From assembly GCA_002269645.1 (NCBI GenBank), contig NIVC01001923.1, positions 1-34,960 of the forward strand: a stretch of DNA of 34,960 nucleotides. Reading direction: 5' to 3'. The notes below the pieces were generated by a model. The model was not told the DNA's origin. It worked only from the letters and a program-made list of their open reading frames with translations, and made no database searches. The DNA comes from Macrostomum lignano. Taxonomy: Eukaryota. Numbering within the stretch: the first letter of the stretch is position 1; each line of letters begins with the position of its first letter. A program made the position numbers and the translations under genes. Of this stretch, positions 1-34,960 are shown piece by piece.

Positions 1-562
1 TGGGTAATTCTCGAGTCTTTGTGCCGTGGTTTTTGGAACTCTTTCTGTGCGTTTTTTAGTTTTCTGCCATGTTTTGTGTTTTTTCCATCATTTACTTGTA
101 GGAATCTTGAACGGACAATGCAAAATCGAGTATTAATCCTAAATAAATGATTATCTGCTACGGCAGAAGGCATAGTCAAGCAAAAACTCCCCAGAAACTG
201 TTGGAAGTTTTCTTAGTACTTACAGAACATTAACCCAAATTTACTTGAATATGTTTCACAGATAATTCTGACCGTCTTTCCTGATAATTTGAGAACACAC
301 TCGTACGGGAAAATCGTATTGATTTACCCAATGCTGGTCACACCTTCCCAGGGGAGTCCAATTAAAAATTTTTAATAAAACAACTTCCTCAGATGTCACT
401 AAAAGCATCACGGACTCCCAGGACTTGGAAAAAGTTTGTATCAATTTAAATCAAAGAAGCCAAATACTCGTATTTTTACAGAATGTGACACTTGAAAAGA
501 CGTTTCACTAACACTCATCGAAAGACAAACATAGCGAAATGAAATAAACTTCGTGTTTTCAG

Positions 563-907
563 GTTCAGCTGCGACTGCTCTCGCGTCGACTTCCAAGGCG
601 CCACCTGCAGCTCCAAGATCGATGACTGCGCGTCGAGCCCGTGCCAGCACGGCGGCAGGTGCACCGACGGTGTCAGGAGCTTCACCTGCGACTGCACAGA
701 CACGGGATTCGCAGGTGACAGGTGCCAAAACAACATTGACGACTGCGCCAGCAAGCCGTGCATTAACGGCCTGTGCACGGACCTGGTGAAAAACTACAGC
801 TGCAGCTGCTTCACAGGCTGGGAGGGCAGGAACTGCTCAGTGGACACTGACTACTGCCTGTCAGGGCCCTGTCAGAACGGCGGCGTCTGCAGGGATGGAA
901 ACTCCAC
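563..907 (+). CDS. paralog exon: tandem EGF repeats (phase 2-2)
   Basis: FSCDCSRVDFQGATCSSKIDDCASSPC...CRDGNS; ttttcag acceptor, GTGAGT donor. Confidence 0.9.
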
Positions 908-3900
908 GTGAGTGGCTCAAAGCTGGTTGAGTTTTTAATTCCTTGGGATAATCTTGCAGTTCTGGATAGCGCTTCAGTTTTATTTGCATGAAATCCAGAG
1001 AGTTATGTTTTCGGTTTCTTGGGCTGACTTAATTTTTGGGATTGGGTACTTGATGGGTTGTGACTGGGTACTTGCTGTTGCGTATTTGAGGTTGGGTGCC
1101 TGGGAATAGGTTTTGCTGAGTGCTTTGGGTTGGGTTAGCTCTGGCTGGGTGTCAGGGGTAGGTGCGTTGGGTTGCGTGATTGGAGATGGGTTGTACCTGA
1201 GTGCTTGTGTTGGGGTAGGTGCTTAGATTTGGATCGTTGTTGGGTGCTGGGGTTGAGTTGTTGTTGGGTGCTTGAGACTTCGTTCTCGGTGTCGGGTTGT
1301 TAGGTTTGAGTCCAGCTTCTGGTTGCTTTGTAGTTAGGCACTTTGAGTTGGTTTCTTGTTGTTGGGTTACGATTGCGTCCTTGTTGAGTTAGATGCTTGG
1401 GGTTGCATAGTGGTTGGGTGCTTGAGGATGGGTTGTGGTTGGGTGCTTGCGGTTGAGTTCTTTTTGGGTGCTTTGGGTTTGAGCTTAGGGTCGATTGATT
1501 GGGTTAGATGCTTCTAGGTGCTGAAGTTGCCTTGTGGTTCGGTTCTTGAGTGTGCGTGCTCTGGACAGCGTCTTCGGGGTTGGGTTCTTAGTGGCATACA
1601 GGTATTAGGTTCGCTTCTATCATACATGTATATGGTTATTGATAGGTATGTTAAGGAGCTGGAAGTTAGGTTTCCGAGTGTTTCCACCGTGCTTTAAAGC
1701 ATTTTTGTGCATTTTTTAAAGTTGTCACAAAGCCGAAACGCAAATGTGAGCTGCTATACAACATGGCTATAATACCTCGCTTTTAAGCTGCCAATCGCTA
1801 AAAGTGAGGATAAAAACCTGATGTCTTAATCGCATGATCTGCTTCTGCGTTACTTATATAAATTTATATATTATATAATATTGTGGGTAAGCAGACATTC
1901 ACACATTCCCGAGCACTCACCTGAACTTCAATCGGACCCAGTGACCCACTAAACAGAGAGCAGAGCCGCTGCTGAATGCTCTATACGATTGGATATTGGA
2001 TGAGTGGCGATGGTTCGTGTCGTGTTGTCAATTTTATCTTTGACCTCTTCCATTGCTCCAATTTTTCTATCTTGTCTGTCCTTCTTGTCTTGTTCCTGTT
2101 TTTTATTTTACTCTTATTTTCGATAATTTGCTGTGTTTTATCTCTTTGCTGAAATAGAATGTAACTTTGTTTCTTTTGAATTTTAAATCTGCGCATGGGC
2201 GTCACTTTGTGGACAATTTTGGCCACAGACAGTCTGAATTAAATGTCTTCTGTTTCAATAAAAAAGGGGACCTTGTTTGAATTGAATTTCCGTGAGGACT
2301 GATATTTCTTAGTGTTTGAATTGAAGTACTGCTAGTTTCTTTTGAACAAGACTTTTTTCAAAAGTCTTGTTCAAAAGAGGTAAAATGGTGTATACTATTA
2401 ATGGTGTATACTATTAACGGAAAATCACTGCTAAACGCTTCTCACATAATTGCAATCGTTGAGTCTGATAATATAAGAAAGAACGCATTGGGGAAACGTA
2501 TTGATTTAGGTCATTGCTGGTCAGAACAGAAGTTTTTACATCAGTTTAAATAACACATTTGTACGTATGTACGTATGTGAGGCTTGAAAACAGGCATTTT
2601 TGGTAAAATAAGGTCACTAATTAAAAACCGCAAGCACAATTAAAACATGTTTTCAATTGTGTACAATTCAGAAAACAAAAGCCAAGTCTAGCAAAATGAA
2701 ATCAACGTCACTATTTCAGGTTCACCTGCGACTGCTCTCACATCGACTTCCAAGGCGACACCTGCAGTTCCAAGATCGATGACTGCGCGTCGAGCCCGTG
2801 CCAGCACGGCGGCAGGTGCACCGACGGTGTCAGGAGCTTCACCTGCGACTGCCTGCCCGGCTACGAGGGCTCGACCTGCTCAGTCGACATCAACGAGTGC
2901 GAGCGGTTCGGACAGCCGTGTCAGAACGGAGCCGTCTGCAAGGACCTGGTAGCGGATTATGCCTGCACCGGCTGCCCCGCTAAGTTCGGAGGCAAAAACT
3001 GCTCCGTGCTGCTTCCACTGTACTCGTTCGGCATAAGCGGACTTGTATCGTCTGCGAGTTTCGCTTCTCTGCCAAATGCGTCAACTGTGTCTGGAGGAGA
3101 CTCGTGGACGATTGAGCTGAGGCTGGTGACTTTGTCTCGAGGAGCGTTTCTGCTGCTGCTGGGCGACCCGAGCGACTCGGCGACCACTCCGAGACTGCTC
3201 GTTACGGTCAGTGACCTTAATGGTTCTTTTTTTTGGATTTCATCAGGTCTCCTAAAGTCAATTTTCGTTTAAATATTTTCAGATTGATCACGACGGCCAT
3301 CTGTCCGCCCAGTTACTGCACAGCAACGGCTCCCACATCGCAGCGCTGACGTCCCCAGTCTCGGTGACCACCGGCAGCTTCGTCTCCGTGAAGATCTATG
3401 TGTCGATATCAGGTCGCTCACTGTCGCTGTCAGTGTCATCTTCAGTCAGTTCGGCATCGCTGAGCAGTGCGAGTCCGCTGCCGCAGCTGTCAGGCCAGCT
3501 CATCATCGGCGGCTTCAGCGGCGCCAAGCCAGCTCCGGCTCCATCGTTTAATCCCAGCCGCCGATCAAGACGATCCATGGCCGCACTGCCAACTGACATT
3601 GCTCGGCTTCTTTCATCAAATATTTCTGCGTTTCGAGGTGTTATAGGCGCCACTAAAATTAATTCGGACCGGGCGTTGATTTTCGAGCAAAACGATTCCA
3701 GTTGGACCGACAGGCTTCCAGCAGCCATTGTTGCCAGCGAGTCAGTAGGTGTCGCTTTTATCACTGAAGCTGAAACTCCTTGCAAGACTTCAAAATCTTG
3801 TCAGAATGGCGCTACGTGTTTGAATGTTTTCTTTGTCACTCATAGGTAAGTTTAGTTAAGGTAGCTAAATACGAGTAGTAACCCAAATTGTATTCTATCA

Positions 3901-4288
3901 CCGCATCTGACTCCAATGTGTTACAGATGTGAGTGTGCAGATGGGTGGCAAGGTCCTACGTGTTCTGACAAGGATTCAAATAAAGACTCGCCTAGAAGTG
4001 CGAGTGCATTGATCGCAGGAATTGTTTCATCCACGATCATTATCATTGGCGCCTGCATTGGTGAGTCCGTTGTTTTACACAACTAACGAGCGAGGCTTCG
4101 TTATTCTGTTCAAATCATTTTCACCTGCAGGTATTCTTGTTTTCCTGAAGCTCCGACGAGCTCACGACGAGAAGCATCGAAGCCCGTGGGTTTGGGACAG
4201 ATTCGACTTGAACGGCCCAACCGGTGTTCGAGTTGGACACCTGAGACCGGACGGAATGCCGCCGTGTCCACAAGAGGTGTTTTTCTGA
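563..4288 (+). CDS. Crumbs-like paralog, 5'-partial (at least 6 EGF - one LamG - EGF - TM - 46-aa divergent tail ending EVFF)
   Basis: Exons 563-907, 2720-3206, 3283-3845, 3927-4060, 4131-4288 join in frame with GT-AG sites. It is homologous to the minus-strand crumbs, with the two LamG2-region intron positions and the intra-TM intron position conserved. The start lies left of the window. Confidence 0.9.
1030..1600. repeat. G/T-rich degenerate low-complexity tract in paralog intron
   Basis: Recurring gggttg and gggtgcttg motifs with strong strand bias. Confidence 0.8.
2720..3206 (+). CDS. paralog exon: EGF repeats joined directly to a LamG2-type domain start
   Basis: FTCDC...[19 protein letters not shown]...TTPRLLVT; GTCAGT donor. 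Confidence 0.9.
3283..3845 (+). CDS. paralog exon: LamG remainder and EGF start
   Basis: IDHDGHLSAQLL...LIIGGFSG...CQNGATCLNVFFVTH; GTAAGT donor. Confidence 0.9.
3927..4060 (+). CDS. paralog exon: EGF end and TM start
   Basis: CECADGWQGPTCSDKD...ALIAGIVSSTIIIIGACI; GTGAGT donor. Confidence 0.88.
4131..4288 (+). CDS. paralog last exon: TM end and cytoplasmic tail
   Basis: cctgcag acceptor; ILVFLKLRRAHDEKHRSPWVW...MPPCPQEVFF*. Confidence 0.85.
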
Positions 4289-5039
4289 GCATTCAATAAC
4301 TTTCAATATGTTTGTTGCGAACAATCATGCTGCCATTGTTTTAGAAATCCTATTAATTGTAAATATGCTTTCAATCCTAAAACTTTTCACCAAAATTTTA
4401 CGAGCGCTCGTACTTTGAACAAATACTTGTGCCTGATCACATCCCAGTTTGCATCCTTTTGAAAAAAAATTACGTCTTAACAACTATACATTTTACTTTC
4501 CTTATACTATTTAAAGTACATGTAAAAAACTTCTTGCATCTTCTGAAATGCATCTGGAATGCATCATGACAACCTGGAACTTAATGATACTATAAAACCG
4601 TAGGGTAGCATTGTTTACAAAGAGAAACTGCAAAAAATTATAGTGCTGTAGCTACATTTTATAGCTTGTATTAGCTGGGCTTACCCGTTTATTCTCGAGT
4701 GCGAACTCTCTACTGCTCGACGCGGAGACTTTTGCCTGCTGGGTGTACCCCCGGGGCCTGTACGTCTCTCCTTCACTAAACTGGTCGCCCGGCCTCCGAT
4801 AGAGTGACATTGTTGACGCCATACTTACAAGTGGACAGAAAAAATTAAAATGAATTACCTTTTATCGATCAAAATTTTAGCAAACAAAGAGAAATGAGCC
4901 ATTATAGACGCACATATAACCATAAGACGCGTATGTCAAAAAAGAGCAGTCTGCACTAGCAATAACAAAAAAATGGTTTGCACCGATAGGTATCGAAATA
5001 GAAAAAGCAACAACATCAAAATACTTAGTCCCCCAGTTA

Positions 5040-5700
5040 GTGGAGAGAGCATCAGATGTCAAATCGATGCGTCAGCGAGCGAACTTGTAAAGCCAATTGA
5101 AGGTGTCTGGCGCCCCAGCGTCGCTCAGGATGCAGTCTACGTACCTCGGGTCCTCGCTTGACCCCACCTAAGCGGTCCCGGCAAAGTGAGCAGCAGGACA
5201 TCCTGAACGGGCTTGAAGGCAGTAGCTCTCAACCCGGTTCACGTGGCTTACCAGTTGACGTTGCCGCCGGTGCAGGATGGTGGATGGGCGCTGTAGCTAA
5301 GTCCTCTGTTACAGGTCTTCGGACCGGACACTCTCATCAGCTTAAAAGGCGTCAAGTCCAGCTGCCCCTCCAGCGTGGCCGCTAAAGTCCACGTCTCGGC
5401 AGTGTAGAACAGGACGGTCTCGACTACCACCGCCTGCCACAGCCGAGCCCTCTGGCAATCGGTCGGGCAGCGAATCGACCTGTGGGCCATCCAGGACTGT
5501 CCTTTCGAGCGCCGGATGTCGTCCTGGCGCCGGGTGGGTACCAGACCTCCGAGGTAGGTGTTCCACTGGCAGTTCTCGAGCCTATAATCATCTGCCCGTC
5601 TTCGCAGCGGCATGGCAGCTCCGTTGGGATATCGGCTAGGATGGTCAGCACCTTGGACTTCAGCGTGTTGACAACTAGGCAGACGCTTGATGTCACGTCG
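5040..5700 (-). mobile_element. degenerate 5'-truncated non-LTR retrotransposon (RTE-like ORF C-terminus)
   Basis: Frameshifted motifs LVVNTLKSKVL, YLGGLVP, RARLWQAVVVETVLFYTAETWTL, DVLLLTLPGP; homologous to the plus-strand copy at 5920-6605. Confidence 0.75.
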
Positions 5701-5919
5701 ACAAACCGAATTAATCATAATTCGAATTAATCGTAATGAGAATTGCAAATGACTCTAGTGGTTTCTAGAGTCATTGGCATTAGCTCAGCGTGAAGGTCAA
5801 TTTAAATCAGTACGAATAATTAGAAAATATGTATGTTGAGAACATGAGCTAGTGTTTCCAATTGTCCATTGCACAATACTTGTAAAGTTGCTCATGCAAC
5901 TGGTGAATTTGCTTTTGCC

Positions 5920-6605
5920 TAGGGACTGTTGGTGAGCGAGTTCCAGTTGGACCATTTCGGACTGTCCGCGAATACCAAAAAGACGATGGTGCTGACCGTG
6001 CCGACGAACCTCCCAGCTGAGATCTACTGCCGCTGCACGAACGGGCAGGTGGCGTTGCTGGCCCGCTGCAAAGAGTGATCGTCTACCTCGGTGGTCTGGC
6101 GCCAAGCATCATGGGGGACACGGCACGGCGCAGGGCGCTTGCCTGGGGCGCATTCCGCACCGTGCGGACTGTCCTGCAGAGCCGGCCGCGCTGCCGGATC
6201 GGCTGAGAGGGCGGCTGTTCCAGGCCGTCACTGAAACCGTCCTCCTTTACAACGCTGAAACGTGGACACCGACGAGTTATACCGACGGGCCCAGCTCTCC
6301 CGACCCAGCCAGCTGCTGCGCATCCGGCACCTACAGCTGGCCGGCCACGTCATCTTGGCAGAGCAGTGCTGCCTTGAGCCGCTTCCAGACGTGCTGCTGC
6401 TCTCCCTCCAAGGGCCGCGCCGGCTTGGTCAGGCGAGAAGTCTGCGTTTTGTCGACCTGCTTTTAAGAGACGCTGAAATCTCCGATCCCGCGGACTCGCT
6501 ATTCTGCGCAAATCTGCGCTTGCGCGCGCATTTTGACAGCAACCCAATTTAGTTGGCTTGCCCAGGGTTGTTGTAGTTTGTTGTAGTTTGTTGTTGTTGT
6601 TGTTG
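5920..6605 (+). mobile_element. degenerate 5'-truncated non-LTR retrotransposon (RTE-like) with (GTT)n-type 3' tail
   Basis: FGLSANTKKTMVL, VYLGGL, RRALAWGAF, RLFQAVTETVLLYNAETW, RHLQLAGHV; tail gttgttgtagtttgttgtagtttgttgttgttgttg at about 6567-6604. Confidence 0.8.
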
Positions 6606-7213
6606 AGCTATTTATGAATGTTATAATGTGATTAACCTAATTTTCTGAACGAAAAGCTTTATGAATATCGATAGAGAGCAATAAAAAAGGCACAACATAT
6701 CAAAAAATGAACACTGGATCTGCCTCCTATCAAAAGCAATAGCAGTTTTTGTGTTGAAAAAATGAAAACTTCCTATCTCCGTAGTGTATTTTTTTTCGGA
6801 AAAACCTACCTTTTAAATTTTCTAAGAAACGAGGTCTCCCGTCAATTCTACTTAAGTCGTCCTTGGTATGTATGCCAATTTAATGTATATAATAAATACT
6901 GAGTTAGCCAGGTATTTTTTTCGAAGTTTCCAAGGCCATATCAACAGCTGAAATTTTATTTTTCATGCCAATAAAACGTTGCCAGCACTGGGGTATAAAG
7001 CTAGTGTAGAAATTACCTTATGATTATTATTAACGAATTACTATAATGGGAAGACAGATTTAACCATAAAAACTCCATGATAGCATTTTCAAGTATTTTC
7101 GCAGCCAAAAATTGCATGGAAAACTTATATACCTACAACCCCGGATTGGGGCGAAAAAATTTTAAATATTTTTTAAAGACTTTTAAGTTGGGGTATTTCA
7201 TATCACTAACGGT

Positions 7214-7613
7214 ACTACTATATGAACCCGTAACGGTTGATTTTGGAGGTGGGGTGGGTGTCAACCCTCCTCGCCTCTCATTGGCTGGCGCCCCGATCAC
7301 TAGGTGATCGATACCCGTATCGATATCGGCGCTCGGCGCGCGCGCGCCGTAGGCGCGTGGCGTCAAGCGCCGTCCAGCCGCAGGCGACCCTCCCCAGCCG
7401 CAGGCGCACCTACCGATATTAGATCCCAATAAATCAATCAGATCCCAAATCAATCAGATCCCAAATCAATCAGATCCCAAGCGCACCCTCCCGAGCAGCA
7501 GGCGTCCATGCCGCAGGCGCCCCTCCCCGCCGCACGCGCCCTCCCCCGACATGTATGCCGCAGGCGCCCTCCCCGCCTCAGGCGCCCCTCCCGATATGTA
7601 TGCGCACTCTCCC
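7214..7613 (+). repeat. left terminal inverted repeat (400 bp, CpG-rich)
   Basis: Reverse-complement identity to 10946-11345. Confidence 0.95.
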
Positions 7614-9057
7614 GAATCTTGCACTATGGCTCTCTAGTGGAAAGTACTCTTACTTGTGCTGGTTGCGGGTGATTGTAAGGCTTTCTGCTTGACTTCTTTA
7701 GTTTACTTGATGGTTAAATGAGGAGTGGGAGCTGACGCGCCTACCTCGGGGGAGGAATGCAGCCCCGCGGTCTGATGCAGCGCTTTCTGTTACCCCTCTC
7801 CGTCCGCACTGTACTTGGTCTCCGCTAGGATCCCCCGGCCCTGGCTCTGGGGGCGGGTCCTTTGTACTCGACCCTGGGTTAAAAACTCACATTTGGAGGC
7901 TCTGGGGAGAGTTGCAGTGGAGTTCAACAAATTTCTGATAAGATCTCTTGCGGGGGCATGACACTCGTCTCGAAATAATAAAAACCTGAACAAGTGCTGG
8001 ATGCCCTTACTAGTTGGCGGGTTGTTACCTCTACAATTGTGTACTATTTCTGTCAATATTTTCCCCTGCATTATGTCAATATGTGCTACAGGGTGTCATA
8101 ATATGATACTTTTACGCACTAATATGTACACTCGTATCATAATTTTCCTGCATTGTGTCTGCTTCTACATCTACGATGTGTGTATTTTAACCTATCCCCC
8201 GATATATAATATGTGCCCGCGATGTGTGGTAATATGCCGAAATGTACATGTACAAAATCAATAGTGTGTATATACGTCTGCATCGTTTTTGTCTATGTTT
8301 TAATAATATACACCTGCATTATACTGGCTTTCCATATGAGTGGCAACTCCTTTGTAACCTACAATTCGTTGACTCAGTGTTAGTGGTATTTTGTAATTAA
8401 ATTACTACGTCTAAATGTTGTATTATTATTGAATTCAATTATTATTGAATTTCACTCCTCATGTGCTAGGGAGGTCTAATTGTAATATAATCTTGCTATT
8501 AATCTACCATCTCTACTGTAAGTAGACTGTGACTTGGTGTCTGGGCTCGAGTTGTGTACTCTTTGTATGAATGCATTCTTGGTGTGTAACTCCTGACCAT
8601 CCCTTCCCTCTGGGAGCACTGCAGGTAGACTAGTATGGCTTGGTATTCAGGGCTGGCGTGTGCACGTAATACTCTGTAATATTTACCGGACTCGGGTGGG
8701 GAAGCTCACTGTACGGCTCTCTCCGTGGGGTGTGATTCACCGCCTCTCTGTCCCGCGCCTCCTGCCAGGGCAGCTCTCTGTCCCTCCGCGGGGGTGACTT
8801 ACACACTGCCTCTCTGTCCCGCGCCGCGTGCTGCGACATGCCGGGTAGCGTCCTCTATCTCCTACTGCCTCCACGCACTCTCTGTCCCCCTCCTGCTACA
8901 GGAGGGCTGGTTGCTCGCTGTACAGGGCAGCGTCAGCATCTGGGTTTCCTTCCTGCACCGTCTACCCCACCACTATACTGACTAACCGCATGCACACGAC
9001 ATTGGTGGGAGGGGCGGAGTTCCCCACTGACGGGTGTACACCTACTCGACGCTGAAG

Positions 9058-9156
9058 GTACACTTGCTGAACGCCCACCCTGTCAGATGTACACTTGCTG
9101 AACACCCATCCTGTCAGATGTACACTCGCTGGACGCCCACCCTGCCGGATGTACAC
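9058..9156. repeat. 31-bp tandem repeat, about 3 copies
   Basis: gtacac recurs at 9058, 9089, 9120 and 9151; unit gtacacttgctgaacgcccaccctgtcagat. Confidence 0.85.
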
Positions 9157-10945
9157 CCCGGGTGACTAATTCGCTTACTTTTCTATTAAAATACTTGCCA
9201 TTTATTATGTCTGCTTTTTATTCAATTTTATATGGTTTGAAGGTTTATTTTGCTGTAATACCTAGTTTCTTATAAAAATCTACTCTCGACGATGGTTGTG
9301 TTGGCTATTTCATTAAAATAACCTGCTTTTGAATAAAACGTTGTATTTAAGCCTCCAGTTTTTTTTCAAAATCATAATGGAAACCCTCCCGACACCCCTG
9401 GAACCTCCTCGAGCAGCTTACATAGAGCTTGCAGACCCTCGAAACCCCTCTAGTGTGCCCTGATTTCAGCGGTCTAGAGGTTAACATCTGAATTTTTACA
9501 CTATATTTTCCTTACATACAATGAGGGTTTGGGATACAGGAGTCTGGAGGGTTTGGAAGAGTGAGTCTGGCGGGAGAGGGGGCTTGTGGGATGATGAGGA
9601 TGTGTACACTGTTTAGCAGTTTTAGCCTACCTTTTGGGCTAATATGCTTACTATTATTACTACTATTATACCTACTATGTACATACTATTATACTACCCA
9701 CTATTAAATATGCGGCACTAAAACCAACTTTTGATAATACATAGCGTGTTTTGGTGGATTCTCCCTCACGTCTCTGTCCCTACACATGTGCTTTTTAGTA
9801 TTCTCTGTTTGTGTACCTCTCTGTAACGTCTCTGTACGCTCAGACTGGTTTCTCCGTCCCCGCGCGCGCCTCTACTAAAGTTTGCTGTTACCTACCCCTA
9901 CACACTGCTCTCTGTCTCCCTCCGCGCACACCTCTCTGCCCTTGCATGCAACTTGCATGTCTACTCCTCTGTCCTGCCCTCGCGTGGGTCCCTGTCTATA
10001 CATAGCTACCAGACCCTACCTCTCTCTGTGCCTTGCTCGCAACTCTGTCCCAGGCCCCCCTTCATACTTCTCTGTCCCGGGCTGCAACTGGCTGACACGC
10101 GCCTCTCTGTTCCCCAGCCTGCGTGGCTGCCTACCCCTGCACACTGCTCTCTGTCCCCCTCCGCGCCTCTCTATCATCCTATTCCTGCAGCTGACCGTGC
10201 CGTTTAGCTCTGTCCACGCACGGCTCCACCCCTGCCCGTGTCTCACTGTACCGCCCTGTGTGGCTCCCTTACCCTGCGCGTTTGCTCCCCATCTCCCTCC
10301 TGCTCCATATGTTTCTGTTCCCTCACACTACGCACACGTGGCTGGCTCTCTGTCCAAACACATCTCTGCTCCTCCACTCTATCCTCGCGTGGCCCCTTGA
10401 CGGTTCGCATGCCCCTGCATACCCTGCCTGCCTCTCTGTCCCCTGCAACTGGGGAGGGAGCTCTCTATCCTCTGTATGGCTTTCTCTGTGGGGTGTGTGT
10501 GACTCACACTACCTCTCTGTCCTAGCATGCGCCTCTCTATCCGGCTCCTGTAGCAGGCTGTGTTGTTCACATCTCTTTCCACCCACCCTCTGCCCGTACA
10601 CGCTCAGTGTACAGGGCTGCGTCAGCATCGGGGTTAAAACTTCTCGCTCCCTATGCTTCAACAGTATAACAACCTAGTGGCTGGTTCTCTGTCCACCCAC
10701 CCCTCTCTGCCCGTACACTCTCACTGTACAGGGCTGCGTCAGCGTTAGGGTTGAAACTTCTCGCTCCCTATACCCCACAACCGTGTAGTGTCCTAGTATG
10801 GGCGCGACCTGGGTTCGATTTCGCTAGTTGAGATGTAGGTGAGAGAGGGGAAGAGGCCCGTATCGATGACTACATATCGGTGTACACACATATCGGGAGA
10901 GTGTACACTCGGGGCGCCTGCTGCATACATATCGGTGTACATATA

Positions 10946-11345
10946 GGGAGAGTGCGCATACATATCGGGAGGGGCGCCTGAGGCGGGGAGGGCGCCTGCG
11001 GCATACATGTCGGGGGAGGGCGCGTGCGGCGGGGAGGGGCGCCTGCGGCATGGACGCCTGCTGCTCGGGAGGGTGCGCTTGGGATCTGATTGATTTGGGA
11101 TCTGATTGATTTGGGATCTGATTGATTTATTGGGATCTAATATCGGTAGGTGCGCCTGCGGCTGGGGAGGGTCGCCTGCGGCTGGACGGCGCTTGACGCC
11201 ACGCGCCTACGGCGCGCGCGCGCCGAGCGCCGATATCGATACGGGTATCGATCACCTAGTGATCGGGGCGCCAGCCAATGAGAGGCGAGGAGGGTTGACA
11301 CCCACCCCACCTCCAAAATCAACCGTTACGGGTTCATATAGTAGT
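10946..11345 (-). repeat. right terminal inverted repeat (400 bp)
   Basis: Reverse-complement identity to 7214-7613. Confidence 0.95.
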
Positions 11346-11361
11346 AACGGTCATGTCATGT

Positions 11362-11590
11362 CGCCCCTGGTGCTGGCGCCCCTGGTGCTGGCGCCCCTGG
11401 TGCTGGCGCCCCTGGTGCTGGCGCCCCTGGTGCTGGCGCCGCTGGTGCTGGCGCCCCTGGTGCTGGCGCCCCTGGTGCTGGCGCCCCTGGTGCTGGCGCC
11501 CCTGGTGCTAAAGCCCCTGGTGCTAAAGCCCCTGGTGCTAAAGCCCCTGGTGCTAAAGCCCCTGGTGCTAAAGCCCCTGATGCTGGCGCT
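11362..11590. repeat. 15-bp GC-rich minisatellite, about 15 copies
   Basis: (gcccctggtgctggc)n switching to a block of gcccctggtgctaaa variants. Confidence 0.95.
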
Positions 11591-11651
11591 CTTTGGTATC
11601 TATTGATACTAGCGAGTATCGTCAGCAAGTTTTGATTCTTTCCCAAATTAT

Positions 11652-11943
11652 TCAAGTGTGTATGGCGGAGACTGGTGGACGATTGAGCTGAGGCTGGTGA
11701 CTTTGTCTCGAGCAGCGTTTCTGCTGCTGCTGGGCGACCCGAGCGACTCGGCGACCACTCTGAGACTGCTGGCTACGAGCGTACGGTCAGTAGCTTTTAT
11801 GACGCCTTTGTTTGACTGCATGAGATATTTTAAAGTCAACTTTGTTTTTTACACCTTTTCAGATCTATCATTCTGGCCGTCTGTCCGCCCAGTTACTGCA
11901 CAGCAACGGCTCCCAAATTGCAGGGCGGACGTCTTCATGTTGA
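11652..11943 (+). pseudogene. third crumbs-family fragment (LamG2 exon end, 77-nt intron, next exon start, then stop)
   Basis: [40 protein letters not shown], intron 11786-11862 (GTCAGT...ttttcag), [26 protein letters not shown]. No flanking crumbs exons were found. Confidence 0.8.
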
Positions 11944-13674: not shown

Positions 13675-13817
13675 TCAAATGAGGCGCTCCTCAGGCGGTG
13701 GCCTCACAGGTGGCTGGGCCTGCGCGTGGGCGTTGCTCCGGCTCTCAGCCTTGGACGGGCCGTAGGTGCCAGACTCTTTGCGACGGTTCTGCACGTACTT
13801 GAATAGCAGCACTGCAA
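13675..13817 (-). CDS. crb: crumbs exon 9: cytoplasmic tail with FERM-binding (GTY) and PDZ-binding (ERLI) motifs
   Basis: cttccag acceptor; [46 protein letters not shown]. Confidence 0.96.
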
Positions 13818-16800
13818 CTGGAAGTTCGGGTTGAAATAAAAATTAAATAATAACAATTAAGTCATTTTACGATTAGCTTACTTTTAGTAGAGTTTGCCGG
13901 CTTAGAAATTTAAACTTTGCATAAGACCGGTTCAGGAAGTGGATTAATACAGATTGATAACTGATTACAGCAGATTGATAACTGATTACTGCAGATTGAT
14001 AACTGATTACAGCAGATTGATAATTGTTTACAGCAGATTGATAACTGATTACTCTAGATTGATAACTGATTACTGCAGATTGATAGCTGATTACTCTAGA
14101 TTGATAACTGATTACTGCAGATTGATAACTGATTACTGCAGATTGATAACTGATTACTATAGATTGATAATTGTTTACAGCAGATTGATAACTGATTACT
14201 GTAGATTGACAACTGATTACTGCAGATTGATAGCTGATTACTCTAGATTGATAACTGATTACTGCAGATTGATAACTGATTACTGCAGATTGATAACTGA
14301 TTACTATAGATTGATAATTGTTTACAGCAGATTGATAACTGATTACTGTAGATTGACAACTGATTACTGCAGATTGATAACTGATTACTGCAGATTGATA
14401 ACTGATTACAGCAGATTGATAACTGATTACAGCAGATTGATAACTGATTACAGCAGATTGATAACTGATTACAGCAGATTGATAACTGATTATTGCAGAT
14501 TGATAACTGATTATTGCAGATTGATAACTGATTACGGCAGATTGATAACTGATTACTGCAGATTGATAATTGTTTACAGCAGATTGATAACTGATTACTG
14601 CAGATTGATAACTGATTACAGCAGATTGATAACTGATTACTGCAGATTGATAACTGATTACTGCAGATTGATCATTGTTTACAGCAGATTGATAACTGAT
14701 TACTCTAGATTGATAACTGATTACTGCAGATTGATAGCTGATTACTCTAGATTGATAACTGATTACTCCAGATTGATAACTGATTACTGCAGATTGATAA
14801 CTGATTACTGCAGATTGATAACTGATTACTGCAGATTGATAACTGATTACTGCAGATTGATAACTGATTACTGCAGATTGATAATTGTTTCAGCAGATTG
14901 ATAACTGATTACTGTAGATTGACAACTGATTACTGCAGATTGATAACTGATTACTGCAGATTGATAACTGATTACAGCAGATTGATAACTGATTACAGCA
15001 GATTGATAACTGATGACAGCAGATTGATAACTGATTACAGCAGATTGATAACTGATTATTGCAGATTGATAACTGATTATTGCAGATTGATAACTGATTA
15101 CTGCAGATTGATAACTGATTACTGCAGATTGATAACTGATTACTGCAGATTGATAACTGATTACTGCAGATTGATAACTGATTACAGCAGATTGATAACT
15201 GATTACTGCAGATTGATAACTGATTACTGCAGATTGATAATTGTTTACAGCAGATTGATAACTGATTACTCTAGATTGATAACTGATTACTGCAGATTGA
15301 TAGCTGATTACTCTAGATTGATAACTGATTACTGCAGATTGATAACTGATTACTGCAGATTGATAACTGATTACTGCAGATTGATAACTGATTACTGCAG
15401 ATTGATAACTGATTACTGCAGATTGATAATTGTTTACAGCAGATTGATAACTGATTACTGTAGATTGACAACTGATTACTGCAGATTGATAACTGATTAC
15501 TGCAGATTGATAACTGATTACTGCAGATTGATAACTGATTACAGCAGATTGATAACTGATTACAGCAGATTGATAACTGATTACTGCAGATTGACAACTG
15601 ATTACTGCAGATTGATAACTGATTACTGCAGATTGATAACTGATTACTGCAGATTGATAACTGATTACTGCAGATTGATAACTGATTACTGCAGATTGAT
15701 GACTGATTACTGCAGATTGATAACTGATTACAGCAGGTTGATAACTGATTACAGCAGGTTGATAACTGATTACAGCAGATTGATAACTGATTACTGCAGA
15801 TTTATAACTGATTTCTGCAGATTGATAAATTGTTCTGAGTGGTCCAAGAATCGAACCCCCAATCTTTCAGTCGTGATTCCGACGCTCTAACCACTAGGCT
15901 ACAACCCGCTTTGCTGCAGATTGCTGAGAACATATCTAATTAGAAGTTGGCACAAGTATAAAATGAGATATCAAATTAATTAATAACTCTTGGCATTGCA
16001 TGCCAAGAAGCACGATCACAATAGGCAGGCTGACACATACTGAACGGGGCTAACAAGGCTCAAAGTTAAATAATTTATAACCTAAACTCTCTCCCACGTG
16101 GGTAAATTAAGAAACTCTTCTGCCTAGATAAGAATTAAAAAGAAAATTGTGTCATTCTGTAAATACAATTCTGTATAGCTGTTGTTTGCGTGTCTGTCAC
16201 GGGAGTGTCTATCAGTGAAGTGTCTGTCACTGGAGTGCCTATCAGTAAATTGTCTGTCACTGAAGTGTCTGTCACGGGAGGGTCTGTCACTGGAGTGTCT
16301 GTCACTGGAGTGTCTGTCACTGGAGTGTCTGTCAGTGAAGTGTCTGTCAGTGAAGTGTCTGTCACGGGAGCGTCTGTCACCGGAGTGTCTGTCATTGGAG
16401 TGTCTGTCACTGGAGTGTCTGTCAGTGAAGTGTCTGTCAGTGAAGTGTCTGTCAGTGAAGTATCTGTCACTGGAGTGTCTGTCAGTGAAGTGTTTGTCAG
16501 TGAAGTGTCTGTCAGTGAAGTGTCTGTCAGTGAAGTGTCTGTCAGTGAAGTGTCTGTCAGTGAAGTATCTGTCACTGGAGTGTCTGTCAGTGAAGTGTTT
16601 GTCAGTGAAGTGTCTGTCAGTGAAGTGTCTGTCAGTGAAGTGTCTGTCAGTGAAGTGTCTGTCAGTGAAGTATCTGTCACTGGAGTGTCTGTCACTGAAG
16701 TGTCTGTCACTGACGTTTCTGTCACAGAAAGTGTCCGTCACTGCAGTTTCAGCTGCATCAACATTAACTCACCAACAGAGATGATGATGACGAGGCCCAC

Positions 16801-22800: not shown

Positions 22801-25800
22801 AAGTGCGCCAGGGTGCACACAACCCCCTGCCTCTAATAAAAAAATCCTGCGTCTTATGCCTAAAATCACTCGCTGGTTTTAAGAATCAATTTAATCATTC
22901 TGGTACACATTTTGTTACACAAGTCAGAGATGAAATAAATAAAAAAATTGAACCCGTGCAAACAGAAACGCCTAATCTTTCTGCAGAGAGCGCCAACCCC
23001 TGAGTCATAAACGGAGTGCAACACAATAAAGTGAAATCGTCCGTAAAAATTGTTTTTCTACCAACCTAGAATTGCCATCGATGCACTGACCGCCATTCAG
23101 ACAGGCGCCAGCAAAGCAGTCATTAATGTTTGCTGAGCAGTGCCGACCTTGCCAGCCCTGATAGCAACTGCAGGTGTAGTTATTGATTAAATCTTTACAC
23201 AGGCCGTTTATGCACGGATTGGTGGCGCAGTCGTCAATGTTGTTCTCGCAGCGGGTGCCTGCATTTGTGAGGTTGGTTGGTTCGCATTGCCTATGGAAAT
23301 TCATATTTTTATGACTGATTTTATCGCGACTCTGTGAATCAGTGAGCCATTGATTGCTTTAATGAGAACCTTTGATAAACAGGTAAACACTTGAACAGAA
23401 ACTCTCCAAAGAGGTATTGTGAAAAATACTACATGTAACTAAAAATAACTGTGACTGTGAAGTGAATGAAGATTTAAAACAATAAAACACAATAACAGAA
23501 GAGAAAAGGGAGAAAGAAGGAAGAAAAGGTGAGATGATATGGAGAGAGTAAAGGGAGAGAGACAGGTGGAGAGGGAGAGAGAAGAGGGAGAGAGGAAAGG
23601 ATAGAAGAGGGGCGGAAAAGAGGAAGAATGAGAGAAGTGAGAATAGAAGAGGGGGATGAGAGAGTGAGAGAAGAGAGAAAGAAGGATGAGAGGGCAGAGA
23701 GGAGAGAGAGGAGCGAGGAGCGGAGAGTGGGAGGAGTGGATAGGAGAGTTGGAGGGAGAGACAGGAAGGTGAACTCACCTAAAGGACACTACTCAAAGCT
23801 ATGTACAAACAAATACTCCCATGACTCCCAAGAATGTGCTTGCATTACAAGCCAATAACATATATGCAATAAAAATTACAACTTGAAACAGGCAGTTAAA
23901 TAAAATTCAAGCCTCAAGCATCTGTGTTGCCAGCAATAACTGATAATAGTTATGCAATACCACGAATTTGAAAATGCAAGCTCAACTCCAAGAAAGCAAG
24001 CCATTTATAAAATGCAACCCTAATAACTGTAGCTAATGAAGCACAATTAAAAGTCAGACTCAGACACAGGTGCTTAATTGAGCTACACTTTAACCTCTAA
24101 GCTTTTAAGCCCCATTATGCGGTGAAAAAGCCCATTGTATTTAAGTGGAGTTTTGATTAAAAATCTTTACAAATTAGCAAATATAATAAAATGTTCAAAA
24201 CAATTAGTGAATGAATAGAAATTTTTGAACGCCATAAACCAGGCAATAAATGTTTAGTGTGGTTACCTCTCTAGTTAGTAGGTTAAAGATCTGTTAATGT
24301 TTTGCGGCACAAATGAGATGATTTATGACAGTTTAGCTTAAAATTGCAGTTGCTCCCGCAGTATTGGGGGGGGGGCAAGGGGGCAAACGACCCTAGTAAC
24401 GAGAGGGGAGGGGGGTGGGGTGGGCGAGGACTTCCAGTATTGAGGGGGCAAATGACCTCAGTATTAAGAGGGGGGCAAACGACTTCAGTATTGAGTGGGG
24501 GGCAAATGACCCCAGTATTGAGGGGGCAAATGACCCCAGTATTGAGGGGGGCAAATGACCCCAGTATTGAGGGGGGGGCAAATGACCTCAGTATTGAGGG
24601 GGGCAAATGACCTCAGTATTGAGTGGGGGGGGCAAATGACCCCAGTATTGAGGGGGCATATGACCTCAGTATTAAGAGGGGGGCAAATGTATTGAGTGGG
24701 GGCAAATGACCCAGTATTGAGGGGGCATATGACCTGACAAACGACTTCAGTATTGAGTGGGGGGCAAATGACCCCAGTATTGAGGGGGGCAGTATGACCT
24801 CAGTATTGAATGACCCCAGTATTAAGTAGGGGGGAAATGACCTCAAAATGACACCATCATTGAGGGGAGAGCAAATGACTCCATTTTGAGGGGAGATGAG
24901 ACTTGTTGGGGGGAACGCAAATGACCCCAGTATTGGGGGAATGACCCTAGTATAAAGGGGGGGGGCAAATGACCCCAGCATTGAGGAGGGGCAAATGACC
25001 TCATTTTGAAGGGGGGGGGAAATGACTCCATTTTGAGAGGAGCAAATAAATTTATGTAAACATTTAAACCGATTACAGTAATCATTAAATAAATGATTAA
25101 TCCATTAACAAGGATATCCGAATAACACACAAACAAACCGCATCAACTCACCATTGAATCCTGGCAAGCAACTGCAGTTGAAGTAGGGCTCAGTCAGCAC
25201 AGTACCAAGGCATGTACCGTTCAGACAGACGGGAGCAACTTTGGGGTCGATGCCAATCTCGGGCTGTGCCGTGGTACAATAGTCAATAATGACGGTGCAA
25301 GTCTGCCCAGTGTAAGGCAGGCTGCACAGACACATGTCTTTGCCGCTGACGGTGACACAGAGTCCGCCATTTTTGCAGTCGGGGCTGCAAACTGCACGTC
25401 TTTGGCGAGATAGAAGTTCTGAGTTGGAATCTATGGGAAAATTGAAATACATTGTTTAATAACAATTAGATGTGGGGAGTACTGATTCGGACACTTTAGT
25501 ATTATGAAGGACACTATTCTGTTTATTGCAAAATTATTTTTTAAACAAGGCCAAGAAAGCAGAAACTAGACTGTTTTGACCATTAAAATTCTATTCAAAT
25601 TCAATACTATAATCTATACATAACTGGATAAGGGAATTGAACATTTTATATTATACCTGCCGCAATAGGCAGATGTGCAACTGACAGCTCAGCCGAAGCT
25701 ATTGTGTGGCGCATCCAAAGCTGTTCAGTCCAAGGACTGGGGGGTCGCCACACACTTCCTCAATCACTCCAGCTAATGCTGGCACCCATTTTACAGCTGG

Positions 25801-29212: not shown

Positions 29213-29831
29213 ATTCGTCGAACTCGCATCAGCTCGGATTCAGCTCGCATACGGCTATATGCCATCAAGTATCTGCAGCAGTGCACAGGTACTCTAAAAC
29301 CAAGTGGCAAGTGTTCCTGCATCCAACAGCGAGAGCGAGACAAACCCCCGCCATCACGTGACCGCGAGTCACCCCTTAGCTGGCCAACCAGAAGCTACCT
29401 GCCCGACTGCCTGCAAGTTTTCGTCCTTTGGGGTTGCGCGCAACGATACCCCTGTCAGAATCAACGCCAGTCAGAGTCAGCCAATCGAGACTGCACTACA
29501 AGTACAAGCGCCAAGAGACCAACTGACCAACAACAAATTGAGCTTAAGCCGGGAGGCCAAGCCAACGCCGGCGGCAACCCAGGACTACACCGAATCACGT
29601 GGCAGTGGCAGGAGACCAGCTAGGTGAGGGAGTTTTCTTAGTATTCAACTCTGCATAGGAACATAGGGCCTGTCTGGCAGAGCCAGTATAATATTTTCTG
29701 GGTTAGTCTAATTTTTCTAGGAATTGTAGTGAGGCTCTTTAACTCTGCCAGACTTCTTTCGTGTTTTTATTATCTGGCCTTTCCTCTCGCCACTCTCTGG
29801 CAAAGCAATATCTGTCATATCTCGTCTCCTA

Positions 29832-32800
29832 ATGTCCTCTTCTAACGAAGAAAGTGATGGGGCCTTGTCGCCCAATGGGGCTGCTGGCCAGGGCCAGCAG
29901 GTTTTACAGTTGCAGACAGAGAGTAGCACATCAACGCCACCTGAAGCTGGTGCCTCAAGCCAACAGGCTGCGCAGGTTGGAGACACAAGTAGGGATGCGA
30001 AACCACCACATGGTATGGCAGAGCAGTCAGACTTAAGTAAGGTCCTCCAGACTCTAACAATGATCCTAGAGAAAACTTGTGACAGAGAGGCTTCCGCAGC
30101 AGCTGAGAAACTTTCAAACTCGAGCCCAAAGCTACGACCACCACCACCCTTTCAACCCCAAATGAATTTCGAACTATGGGAGACACAGTTTCTGACTTAT
30201 GTTGAAGCTCATCATGTCCCAACACTTCAGCAACCAGCTGTCCTATTGTCAATGCTCGCACCTGAGTGCCAAGAATTCATTTTTAACAACTCTCTGCACC
30301 GCGAGTCCATTCAAACTGCACTAAAAAGTCTGAAAGATCGATTCACAGATTCGGGAACAGAACACAAAAGCTACTTAGAGCTTGCGGTTGCCGAACAGTT
30401 AAACTCGGAAACAACACAGGAGTTCTTTGACAGACTAACAAGACTATCAAAGTCTGCTAATCTTAAAAAACCTACCGCCGAACCCTTGGTGCGAGCTCGG
30501 TTTTGCTATGGTCTGAGAGATAAGGGTCTTGCTGAAAGACTGATCCTCCTGGGTCAAGAAAACCCAACATGGTCTGCTGAAGATTTAGCAAAAAAGGCCA
30601 GGGAAATTGCCGGTGTCAAGAAGCTCTTATCTAGTGAAGTAACTCCAGTCATCAGAGCTGCCGCCCCTGACAGAACAGCAGAATTAGAAGCCCGAATCCG
30701 CGAGCTTGAAAAACTAGTTCAACAGAATCAGACCACTCAGTCTTCAGATCATAATTCAAAAGATTTTCAGAACTTTCCTTCACAAGTGCCGCCTGTCAAT
30801 CTGGGGCAATCTGGCCAGTACAAGAACAGTAGTCGTTGGTCTAAATCCCCTAAGCGATGCAATCGGTGCAGCGACCATGACCATTTAACTGCGGACTGCC
30901 CGAAACCACCGCCCTCCAATGGGGTAGGGGCAGGTGGAAGACCAACTGGTATGGCCCCAATGATGGAAATAGGAACCATAACGGTTTGGAAAGGTGGATT
31001 TGGCTTTATCCAGCCAAGTCAGATGCCAGACTCCCTCTTTTGCCATTATTCCAGCCTTGACAACGAGTTAAAACAGGTTGCAAACAGCCATCAGTTAGTA
31101 GGCACAACTGTGCAATTCTTACGCCGAGCAGATCCTGGTCACAAACATGATAGAGCAGTAGGGGTCTGTCGCTACCAAATGCCTGTCCGATGTGACCAAT
31201 CCTGGGCGGCCGATACTCCAGTCGAGTCTAGTATGTTTGTGCAGTTGGGAATTGGAGACAACAAGGTCATCGCTTGCCTTGATTCAGGTTGCAATGCAAG
31301 CGTCATGGGCACCAAAGTCAGAGACCAACTGATTGCAAACGATCCAATCAACAATACATTTATTCCTGCTAGAAAATACCAAGCTGCAACAGCATTTAAT
31401 GGTACCTCGACACAGATTCTAGGCACCCTACACTGTGAAGTCAAGCTGGGCAAAATATCACAGACTCACGTGTTCCTAGTCACAGAAGGTCAAGTTACAG
31501 ACGTCCTCTTAGGAATAGACTTTATGAGAGGTTTTAACGTGAACCTGCTTGTTGCAGATGGTCAGGTAACTGTAGCGGGCGAAGTGGTACCTGTGATTGA
31601 AGGCGATCGGGGAGTCTTTCAAGCTCGCAGAGTCACTGCAGCTTGCAACGTGCAGTTACCCCCCAGATCAGAGACCATGGTGCCAAGCCGAGTCATTGGT
31701 GCAGATCCTGGCTCTCCTGGATTCCTGGGCACCAAGCTCTTTTGTTCTGACTCGGAATTCTTTGTGGCTCATTCTGTGGATAGTGTGAGCAGCACTGGTC
31801 ATGTCCTGGTACGCCTATTGAATAGTGGCAACCAGCCGTCCGAAATTGCTGCGGGACAGGAGATCGCCTCCTTTCAAAGCTTAAGAGTTGGTGAGACCAT
31901 CTCGCACACTGCTCTCACCGAGAAGGACTTCTCAGTTAGCAGTTCCAAAGATCTGGGAACCAAGCTTGCTAAACTTCCTGACCCTGATCTTGGCACAGCA
32001 TCTTGGCTAAAGAAGCAGTTCAAACTAGAAGAGTCCACCCTGTCAGAAACCCAGTTGACAATAACATTAAAACTGTTAAACTATTTCCTCAGTGCGATAT
32101 CTAAAAGTGACACGGATTTAGGGAAAACACACCTTCACGAGATGGCTATTGAGCTCAACGAACCAACCTGCCGACCCATCTCGCAACCCTCAAGACGCAC
32201 AACACCAGCGCAAAAAGAATTTTTAGATCGGCACATAAACCAGCTAATTGAACAAGGAGTGATCGAAGAAAGCAACTCAGAATGGGCTTCTCCCATAGTC
32301 TTAGTTAGGAAAAAAGACGGCTCGCAGCGCCTTTGCATTGATTACCGTAGTGTCAACAAAGTCATAAAACCGTGCACCTTTCCGCTGCCTCTAATAGAGG
32401 AGTCCTTTGATAGCTTAGCGGGGTCAAAGGTATTCTCAAGTTTAGATCTTACATCTGCCTACTGGCAGGTAGGTATCCGAGAACAGGACCGTGATCTCAC
32501 GGCCTTCACATGTCCCCAGGGGACCTATCGCTGGAAAGTTGTCCCATTCGGGATAAAAACAGCCCCAGCGAACTTTGCCAAGTTGATGCACAAAGTTTTC
32601 CGACCTTTATTAATGCGCGTCAGCCTCATCTACTTGGACGACATCATTATAAAAGCCAGAGACAATGACGAAATGATCGTCCACCTGGCCCTTGTCCTTT
32701 GGCAACTTAAAAAGGCCAATCTAAAAATCAAGCCATCGAAATGTGAACTTTTTAAGGATCGAGTTCGTTTCTTAGGATTCGTCGTCTCCTCCCAGGGCAT

Positions 32801-33791: not shown

Positions 33792-34960
33792 GGATGAGAT
33801 GTCAGAAAACTCCGAGAATCTATGGGCTAGAGAAGCTCAAGAATCTAGCACAGATCTCGTGAGATTGATTGAGGCCGTTGAAGGGAAATCTCCAAGACTA
33901 ACTAAGGTTGAAGTCCAGGACTGCAGTCGTGAAATTCGAACGCTTTGGGCCATGTTTGACGAACTCGAAGTTGTAAATGGCCTTCTGACTCGCGTCAAAC
34001 CGCTAAGCAGGGCCAAGTCAGTCAGCGACTCATAATCATACCAGAGACAGCAGATGTTGATGAGCTAGTTTCCTGCTATCACAGAGACATTAATCACTGC
34101 GGAATCAACAAAACAGTCCGGGCCTTAAAACAAAGGTTCCAAATCACAAACCTCGAAGTATTCGTGAAGGGAATCATTGCTGAATGCGAGGTATGCTGCC
34201 GCACTAAGAAGAACAAACGGAAGAATAAAGAACCATTAGAACCAATTTTATCAGGCTATCCAAATCAAATTGTGCACGTTGACCACGCAGGGCCTTTCCC
34301 AGAGCAGGAGGGCAACCGTTACTTGCTGGTGCTAGTAGATAACTTTTCTGGGTATGTAGAGATCGTGCCTGTCCCAGACGTCTCGGCCGCAACTACCGCC
34401 ACAGTTATACTAACCGAGTGGATAGTTCGATATGGCACTATGGAGAAACTTGTTTCGGATAATGGCACGGCCTTCATAAATAAAACGGTAGCGGAGCTCA
34501 CCAGACTACTTGAAATAGACATGGCACGTATCACCGCACACAGGCCGCAATCAAACGGTAAAGCGGAAAGGACCATACAATCAATCAAAGCGCAGATTCG
34601 TGCAATTTGCCTTGAAAAAAGAGTCAATTGGGTCTATGCAGCTCGTTTGGCCGGTCTTTCAATCCGGACGACTGTGGCCGAATCCACAGGCTGGACCCCA
34701 GCCAGGCTCTTTTTCGGTCGGGAACTTGTGCTGCCTCTAGACCTGCTGTTCAACCCGCCAAGGCACGACAGGTATGATCCAGACTGTTATGCACACAAGC
34801 TGCACAAACTATTGGTGGAGGTATCGGCGATCGCCCGCATGGAGCGAGGTAAGGCCAACAGAGGCAAAAGCGGAAATTATGATCGTATACCATTCACTCC
34901 AACTTCGAAATCGGAGAACTGGTGTGGGTACTCAACCCCGACCATCGGGATTAGACTCAG
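33792..34960 (+). CDS. Pol continuation with frameshifts: tether region and integrase (HHCC, D-D35-E)
   Basis: LWAREAQ...RTLWAMFDELEVVNGLLTR in the shifted frame. From 34014 the original frame resumes: H34080/H34095/C34185/C34194, D34281, D34458, E34566, GWTPARLFFGREL. NFEIGELVWVL follows a further shift near 34885. Confidence 0.9.

Follow-up and report, generated by a model that had tools for sequence, protein, structure and literature searches.

What becomes of a Crumbs protein when its outside is kept and its inside is replaced? The cytoplasmic tail of Crumbs is among the most conserved short signaling peptides in animals and binds FERM proteins (Moesin, Yurt, and Expanded) via GxY and Stardust/PALS1 or Par6 via ERLI. 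The question is raised by the contig NIVC01001923.1 of Macrostomum lignano (assembly GCA_002269645.1), which in its entirety, at 34,960 bp, is the stretch analyzed here (the window). It carries a plus-strand gene, here called the EVFF gene, with a Crumbs-like ectodomain and a last coding exon at 4131-4288 that ends in EVFF. We demonstrate that this exon is a genuine terminal exon of a transcribed M. lignano gene, that the EVFF gene is an old paralog of the crumbs gene on the opposite strand, and that the distal part of its tail is under purifying selection. The overall explanation that we favor is that the EVFF gene is a crumbs-derived paralog that has probably been rewired inside the cell through this selected tail.

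The EVFF gene has five exons on the contig, all with canonical GT-AG borders and compatible phases (protein models are given by their P numbers):

563-907, plus strand: exon A, three EGF repeats; the junction between exons A and B is confirmed by P0001
2720-3206, plus strand: exon B, EGF repeats and the start of the LamG domain
3283-3845, plus strand: exon C, the body of the LamG domain and the first half of an EGF repeat
3927-4060, plus strand: exon D, the second half of the EGF repeat, a 15-residue linker, and most of the transmembrane (TM) helix
4061-4130, plus strand: last intron, GT-AG, phase 1, inside the TM segment
4131-4288, plus strand: exon E, the last coding exon, with the last five TM residues (ILVFL), the 46-residue tail (KLRR...PQEVFF), and the stop

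Exon D ends in GCC TGC ATT G (...GACI(G) in the protein), followed by the donor gtgagt; the intron ends in cctgcag, and exon E is read as G)ILVFL and then KLRRAHDEKHRSPWVWDRFDLNGPTGVRVGHLRPDGMPPCPQEVFF, with the stop codon TGA at 4286-4288. Hydropathy gives a single TM helix, ALIAGIVSSTIIIIGACIGILVFL, followed by KLRR, which corresponds to a type I topology. P0121 (304 residues) is an exact substring of the spliced model and equals the annotated coding sequence (CDS) at 3147-4288; therefore, exon E is no chance open reading frame (ORF). The GenBank annotation of the assembly is RNA-seq based, using genome-guided assembly with StringTie and TACO, gene boundaries set by TBONE from trans-splice and poly(A) reads, and ORFs from TransDecoder (PMC5730564). 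The original prediction for this locus, made from its sequence, had left open whether the splice at 4061-4130 and the stop at 4288 are used in transcripts: both are used by the RNA-seq-derived gene models. These models include the last exon, so that the gene is not untranscribed, and the plus strand of the window has no alternative exon that ends in E[RK][LIV][LIV] and a stop and could supply an ERLI-type tail. We take the UniProt model P0002 as a mis-prediction, since it leaves out exon D and, with it, the TM helix. The motif AATAAA was not found within 550 nt past the stop, and ATTAAA occurs at 4844, which is uninformative.

The 5' part of the EVFF gene lies off the contig. In the corresponding locus on NIVC01000114.1 (L001), the gene continues for ∼7.4 kb upstream of the matching position. 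This locus encodes P0001 (830 residues), which has a signal peptide, ∼12 EGF repeats, and one LamG-like domain and is 94% identical to the window gene, with an identical tail. Thus, the encoded product is a type I membrane protein with a signal peptide, ∼12 EGF repeats, one LamG-like domain, one EGF repeat, a TM helix, and a 46-residue tail. The Pfam EGF family matches the plus-strand gene with E = 5.9e-31, while Laminin_G_2 stays just under threshold in the window fragment (21.3 versus 22.9 bits) and in P0001. An EGF-encoding exon has been tandemly duplicated within the gene: exons A and B are 91% identical in their 5' ends, including ∼40 nt of the intron before each (521-695 and 2678-2852).

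Window positions 1-7213 are collinear with L001 at 95.75% identity and with equal gene order. This fits the M. lignano genome, in which 180 Mb of non-repetitive blocks are at least 95% identical (PMC5730564), and collinearity and gene order identify the window as the allelic or homeologous counterpart of the locus BOX15_Mlig031842g2. Over the 561 codons compared between the window and L001 copies, the ratio of nonsynonymous to synonymous substitution rates (dN/dS) is 0.29, and both copies have uninterrupted ORFs and intact splice sites throughout; the last intron differs at one of its 70 nt, and the only two changes in the tail exon are synonymous. Divergence between the two copies is patchy: exon C (3283-3845) differs by 9.1% and the 81-nt intron between exons C and D by 0, the long intron between exons A and B differs by 3.2%, and the short 76-nt intron between exons B and C by ∼20%. 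Exon C of one of the two copies was probably overwritten by another family member.

The original prediction framed the tail as a unique rewrite. This framing does not hold, as the EVFF tail defines a small tandem family with two subfamilies, type 1 and type 2, whose copies in the window, in L001, and in a further locus (L002) are as follows:

Window, plus strand: type 1, the gene under study
L001: type 1, P0001
L002, 6706-7081, upstream of P0004: type 1, with a 14-nt insertion in exon D that causes a frameshift
L001, upstream: type 2, near-identical to the type 2 copy of L002
L002: type 2, P0004, 977 residues, 58% identical to the window gene

The C terminus is EVFF, and not ERLI, in all five copies examined. 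Type 2 tails end in RHKKLAAEKLISKSYWATLDLDGPTGVRVGHLRYDGVAPVPQEVFF, and P0004 scores over the Laminin_G_2 threshold. The type 1 copy of L002 also lacks two codons in its tail, and no gene is called there. This copy is probably a pseudogene and, being frameshifted and unannotated, was left out of the selection test.

Type 1 and type 2 have the distal 28 residues DL(N/D)GPTGVRVGHLRxDGxxPxPQEVFF in common. Over these 28 codons, the two subfamilies differ by 11.8 synonymous and 8.2 nonsynonymous differences, giving a dS of 1.01, a dN of 0.144, and a ratio of 0.14 (Fisher p = 1.2e-4). The 24 codons of the TM end and juxtamembrane region, by comparison, give a ratio of 0.71. Because dS is high, the likeness of the two tails reflects neither recency nor conversion. 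The distal tail is under purifying selection, and neutral evolution of the tail, which would have spoken against the original prediction, is not what we find. In an exhaustive phmmer search with the 51-residue tail against 1.84 billion representative proteins, only M. lignano proteins were credible; four additional weak matches (P0122-P0125) are internally repetitive, were matched in several stretches, and are spurious. A word-indexed search with the same 51 residues gave no candidates despite identical proteins in the database, which is a limit of the index, and phmmer was used instead.

The gene to which these tails have to be compared lies on the opposite strand:

26041-13675, minus strand: crumbs, complete, nine GT-AG exons, 1247 residues, ATG at 26041 and stop at 13675
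13817-13675, minus strand: last exon of crumbs, starting with VAVLLF and ending in ...PPPEERLI and the stop

The crumbs model is uninterrupted, with a signal peptide, EGF repeats, LamG-type regions of which one is over the Pfam threshold, a TM helix, and a canonical tail; its Pfam matches are EGF and Laminin_G_2, the latter with E = 6.9e-13. At the N terminus, 499 of 502 residues match P0029; at the C terminus, P0126 is 97% identical over a 342-residue query and agrees with the model in all of its last 60 residues. A word-indexed search with the C-terminal region returned only P0126 and one weak EGF match, and the assignment of the minus-strand gene as the crumbs ortholog therefore rests on its architecture and on its tail. 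The 41-residue tail carries both GTYxPS and PPPEERLI and aligns end to end, with E = 3.9e-4, with the 37-residue Drosophila Crumbs tail of PDB entries 4WSI and 4YL8, in which this tail was crystallized with PALS1 and with Moesin. The crumbs and EVFF genes are convergent, tail to tail, and ∼9 kb apart.

The EVFF tail, in contrast, begins with KLRRAHDEKHRSPWVW and ends in ...MPPCPQEVFF. It contains no G[ST]Y and no match to the FERM-binding motif R-x-x-x-G-T-Y-x-P-S, and its C terminus reads P-x-P-Q-E-V-F-F versus P-P-P-E-E-R-L-I in crumbs. The absence of GTY and the replacement of ERLI by EVFF, both part of the original prediction, are seen alike in the spliced model, P0001, and P0121. In the PDB search that matched the crumbs tail to Drosophila Crb, the EVFF tail returned nothing at E ≤ 10. 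A residual likeness to crumbs is confined to the C terminus. Gapless, C-terminally anchored comparison with RPPPEERLI beats shuffled sequences for PPCPQEVFF (p = 0.005) and for APVPQEVFF of type 2 (p = 0.0005): the two prolines (-7 and -5) and the glutamate at -3 are shared, -4 is occupied by E or Q, and the last two positions (-1 and 0) carry hydrophobic residues. Thus, of the skeleton RR...SP plus PPxPxExΦΦ that had been proposed to persist, the second part stands as P-x-P-[EQ]-E-x-ΦΦ, while RR...SP is uninformative, being a generic basic stop-transfer cluster. Local alignment of the remainder of the tail with the crumbs tail is not significant (p = 0.5 and 0.13), and neither is nucleotide local alignment of the tail exons (p = 0.2 and 0.6). 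We further considered an origin by frameshift, in which RVGHLRP of the EVFF tail would correspond to RVWHLRP in another frame of crumbs, and rejected it: shuffling gave p = 0.06 for type 1 and 0.15 for type 2, and the two motifs are ∼20 codons apart.

That the EVFF gene is a paralog of crumbs, as had been claimed, is borne out by a common 3' exon structure and by tracts of 84-95% nucleotide identity to the adjacent crumbs. First, the intron that splits an EGF repeat after the middle LamG-type region (LamG-B) is in phase 2 in both genes (...FFVTH(R)/CEC... versus ...FYNSY(S)/CNC..., the slash marking the intron). Second, all three kinds of gene (crumbs, type 1, and type 2) have a phase 1 last intron that interrupts the TM segment 5-6 residues before the basic cluster:

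crumbs, across the last intron: ...IIISV/
Type 1, across the last intron: ...GACIG/ILVFL-KLRR
Type 2, across the last intron: ...AAFVG/IFIVV-RHKK

Other family members, P0003 and P0013, have introns after the TM helix and long multi-exon tails; the single tail exon thus ties the EVFF genes specifically to crumbs. Third, exon D aligns with two different crumbs exons: over its 5' part with the start of exon 7, at 59% identity, and over its 3' part with the TM end of exon 8. Exon D therefore looks like a fusion, judged by these alignments, and such a fusion would imply an internal deletion of one EGF repeat, LamG-C, and another EGF repeat. The EVFF gene is without LamG-A and LamG-C and keeps the counterpart of LamG-B.

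The codon alignment with crumbs is a mosaic. Over most of the gene, dS is at least 1, i.e., saturated; at residues 163-202 and 243-362 of the plus-strand gene, it is 0.06-0.12 (92-97% nucleotide identity). Two conversion tracts were delimited:

2838-3002, plus strand, with crumbs 20659-20495, minus strand: 95% identical
3283-3548, plus strand, with crumbs 19218-18947, minus strand: 93% identical

This mosaic indicates that the duplication is old and that part of the ectodomain has recently been homogenized by conversion between inverted neighbors, an ongoing process that the framing as a unique rewrite did not capture. By a definition based on the tail, the EVFF gene falls outside the Crumbs family, yet by descent it is a paralog.

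In the explanation that we consider probable, the EVFF protein would display a Crumbs-like surface on the extracellular side, would be uncoupled on the intracellular side from the FERM (Moesin/Yurt/Expanded) and ERLI (Stardust-PALS1/Par-6) machinery, and would dock instead via its conserved distal peptide. In sequence, the V-F-F at the free C terminus fits the class II PDZ ligand pattern hydrophobic-x-hydrophobic, and it is kept, with synonymous changes, between the subfamilies. The likeliest mode of docking, which we suggest only tentatively, would be as an extended C-terminal ligand of a different PDZ-type scaffold, with V-F-F as its class II-like end. The PDZ-SH3-GK module of PALS1 recognizes an extended Crb peptide, and the long conserved EVFF stretch recalls that mode. 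Because the ectodomain has been kept Crumbs-like, an interaction between the EVFF protein and Crumbs in cis or in trans is plausible. A more elaborate version, to which we give little credence, is that the EVFF genes encode tail-swapped Crumbs partners, in which the conversion-kept ectodomain pairs with Crumbs and the 28-residue module recruits a scaffold other than Stardust/PALS1, Par-6, or FERM proteins. If true, this would provide a second, parallel apical or junctional signaling output like that of CRB1-A/CRB1-B in the retina of vertebrates, evolved independently by duplication.

Several observations count against a rewired and selected tail. The tail keeps E at -3 and a hydrophobic character in its last two positions (-1 and 0), so that some binding to the PDZ domains of PALS1 or Par-6 may persist, and the C-terminal FF might be a trafficking signal. 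The selection estimate comes from 28 codons in one subfamily pair with saturated dS. The annotated CDS of the contig is a 304-residue fragment, which it is because the contig ends inside the gene. Finally, the upstream type 2 copy of L001 is not among the called genes, and the frameshift in the type 1 copy of L002 indicates that part of the family is decaying.

The trafficking possibility leads to an alternative that we regard as rather unlikely, namely that the EVFF protein is a decoy or modulator whose ectodomain titrates or heterodimerizes with Crumbs and whose tail serves transport only, through FF-dependent COPII export and a di-basic cluster. The homogenization of ectodomain tracts with crumbs would suit such a role, except that gene conversion may be a mere by-product of inverted proximity. 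A C-terminal di-phenylalanine is a COPII signal for export from the endoplasmic reticulum, e.g., in ERGIC-53, and the EVFF tails combine FF at the free C terminus with a juxtamembrane RR or KK. In Drosophila Crumbs, the juxtamembrane di-basic RxKR serves export via Sar1/COPII, and C-terminal export signals of a hydrophobic kind have also been described (PMC6681134). The RR of the EVFF gene coincides with this export cluster of Crumbs and is also a generic stop-transfer feature. Conservation, however, runs well past FF, and the ∼28 conserved residues (DLxGPTGVRVGHLR...) exceed the needs of an FF export signal.

We think it improbable that the EVFF protein is still a functional Crumbs, in which EVFF binds the PDZ domain of Stardust/PALS1 or Par-6 and which thereby amounts to a FERM-less isoform made from a separate gene. 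The C-terminally anchored P-x-P-[EQ]-E-x-hydrophobic-hydrophobic and an exon that is positionally homologous to the crumbs tail exon speak for this idea. By contrast, the canonical tails compared invariably have R at -2 and I at 0, for which the EVFF tails have V and F, a change fixed in both subfamilies; and the profile-free PDB search, in matching the tail of the neighbor to Crb and the EVFF tail to nothing, separates the two.

Similarly improbable is that the tail was captured from an unrelated gene by replacement of the 3' exon across the TM intron. Except in the last 8-10 residues, likeness to the crumbs exon is not significant in either protein or nucleotide sequence, and tails are labile in this family, with other members having quite different multi-exon tails. 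Yet no donor was found, the tail motif being confined to the EVFF family among the representative proteins searched, and the intron phase, the TM remnant of 5-6 residues, the basic cluster, and the single-exon layout are all as in crumbs. Because of the C-terminal likeness and the positional homology of the exon, divergence of the tail in place seems more likely than exon capture.

Very improbable, finally, is that the EVFF gene is a non-functional recent duplicate or pseudogene whose conservation reflects only recency or conversion: the redundancy of the genome (180 Mb at ≥95% identity; PMC5730564), the frameshifted type 1 copy, and a fragment remnant at 11616-11933 would be in line with this, but the type 1 and type 2 tails combine a dS of ∼1.0 with a dN/dS of 0.14, the ORFs and splice sites are intact in the window and L001 with a dN/dS of 0.29 over 561 codons, and the gene models are transcript derived.

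A crumbs-derived paralog with a rewired tail can be placed among known systems. Like canonical Crumbs proteins (Drosophila Crb and vertebrate CRB1/2/3-ERLI), the EVFF protein is of type I with EGF repeats, LamG, EGF, and a TM helix, and its tail is short and encoded by a single exon, with a basic juxtamembrane cluster and the C-terminal P-x-P-[EQ]-E-x-hydrophobic-hydrophobic. It differs in lacking GTYxPS, in having EVFF for ERLI, in the new conserved core DLxGPTGVRVGHLR, in an ectodomain reduced to one LamG-like domain, and in tail length (46 residues versus 41 in M. lignano crumbs and 37 in Drosophila). Class II PDZ ligands are found on receptors with LamG or EGF domains and others, including neurexin (EYYV), syndecan (EFYA), and glycophorin C (EYFI). 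EVFF resembles these ends in two ways: hydrophobic or aromatic residues come after an E at -3, and the protein is a type I adhesion-type receptor. Unlike them, the EVFF tail is without a 4.1/FERM juxtamembrane motif, and there is no sequence homology, the likeness of -VFF being one of pattern. To our knowledge, there are few cases of a Crumbs ectodomain on a different conserved tail, i.e., CRB1-B and CRB3-CLPI, and each of them is functionally important.

CRB1-B of vertebrate photoreceptors joins a Crumbs ectodomain to a wholly different intracellular domain that is conserved between species and has neither motif, and it acts alongside CRB1-A (PMC7335077). The EVFF gene is alike in pairing such an ectodomain with another tail that has neither motif and is conserved in its own right. 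The two differ in origin, CRB1-B being made from a single gene with alternative 5' and 3' exons and the EVFF genes being a separate tandem family, and their tails are unrelated (CRB1-B ends in ...WGAQENY). In CRB3-CLPI (CRB3b), ERLI is swapped for another C terminus, which binds importin beta-1 and confers other functions (PMC2064851). The EVFF gene also has ERLI replaced by another C terminus; unlike CRB3-CLPI, in which the FERM/4.1 region is kept and the last 23 residues are changed by splicing, it has lost both motifs and is a separate gene. Non-canonical tails were thus already known from vertebrate Crumbs isoforms (PMC7335077, PMC2064851), which is a further reason not to regard the EVFF tail as unique. 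The principle of a Crumbs ectodomain on an alternative tail is known, and the EVFF family adds a variant specific to one lineage, not a system of a new kind. What is new is the route, by a tandemly duplicated gene family beside crumbs and not by alternative splicing; the concerted evolution of the ectodomain with crumbs, in which the diverging tail takes no part; and a tail sequence that, by the searches described, appears to have no relatives outside M. lignano. The same solution has been reached independently, by duplication, in a flatworm amenable to RNA interference and transgenesis. As the EVFF gene and crumbs swap ectodomain sequence by conversion but not tails, they constitute a natural experiment that separates the functions of ectodomain and tail, and the defined 28-residue peptide could serve as a bait in the search for a new partner.

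The best protein matches of the spliced plus-strand gene are all M. lignano models. Two genes are called on the contig, the CDS at 3147-4288 on the plus strand and a CDS with its end at 13675 on the minus strand, and annotation at these loci is limited to "hypothetical proteins." No paper naming these genes or describing Crumbs-family genes of M. lignano was found in the literature, candidate works being judged by title.

On NIVC01000114.1, the family forms a cluster of ∼200 kb adjoining crumbs (∼687-905 kb; L001, L003, L004, and L005), with P0003, P0009, P0013, the type 2 gene, and P0001 on one strand and crumbs facing them. Tails vary within the cluster, being either EVFF tails or long multi-exon tails rich in tyrosine motifs. 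The LamG core is nearly invariant across all retrieved family members, which suggests concerted evolution across the cluster. One more piece of the family lies in the window, outside the EVFF gene:

11616-11933 (∼320 bp), plus strand: family fragment, LamG exon B/C-like, 81% identical to 3045-3353, frame broken

This fragment is also present in L001 and is a probable pseudogene remnant.

Between the EVFF gene and this fragment, inverted-repeat arms of 415 nt at 7199-7613 and 10946-11360 are 99% complementary and spaced by 3332 nt. The ∼4.15-kb block at 7213-11363 is absent from the otherwise collinear L001. It resembles an insertion that is confined to one haplotype and bounded by long terminal inverted repeats. 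In crumbs, tandem arrays at 13942-15828 and 16190-16747 fill most of the 3-kb last intron, and further arrays lie at 11362-11589 and 24435-24809; the array units are 21 bp (∼90 copies), 15/105 bp, 15 bp (15 copies), and 27/130 bp. At the far end of the window, 29733-34960 on the plus strand holds a long ORF of 1352 residues followed by a 333-residue ORF with integrase-like sequence, a Ty3/gypsy-type long terminal repeat retrotransposon that extends past the contig end. ORF fragments resembling reverse transcriptase also occur at 5251-6463.

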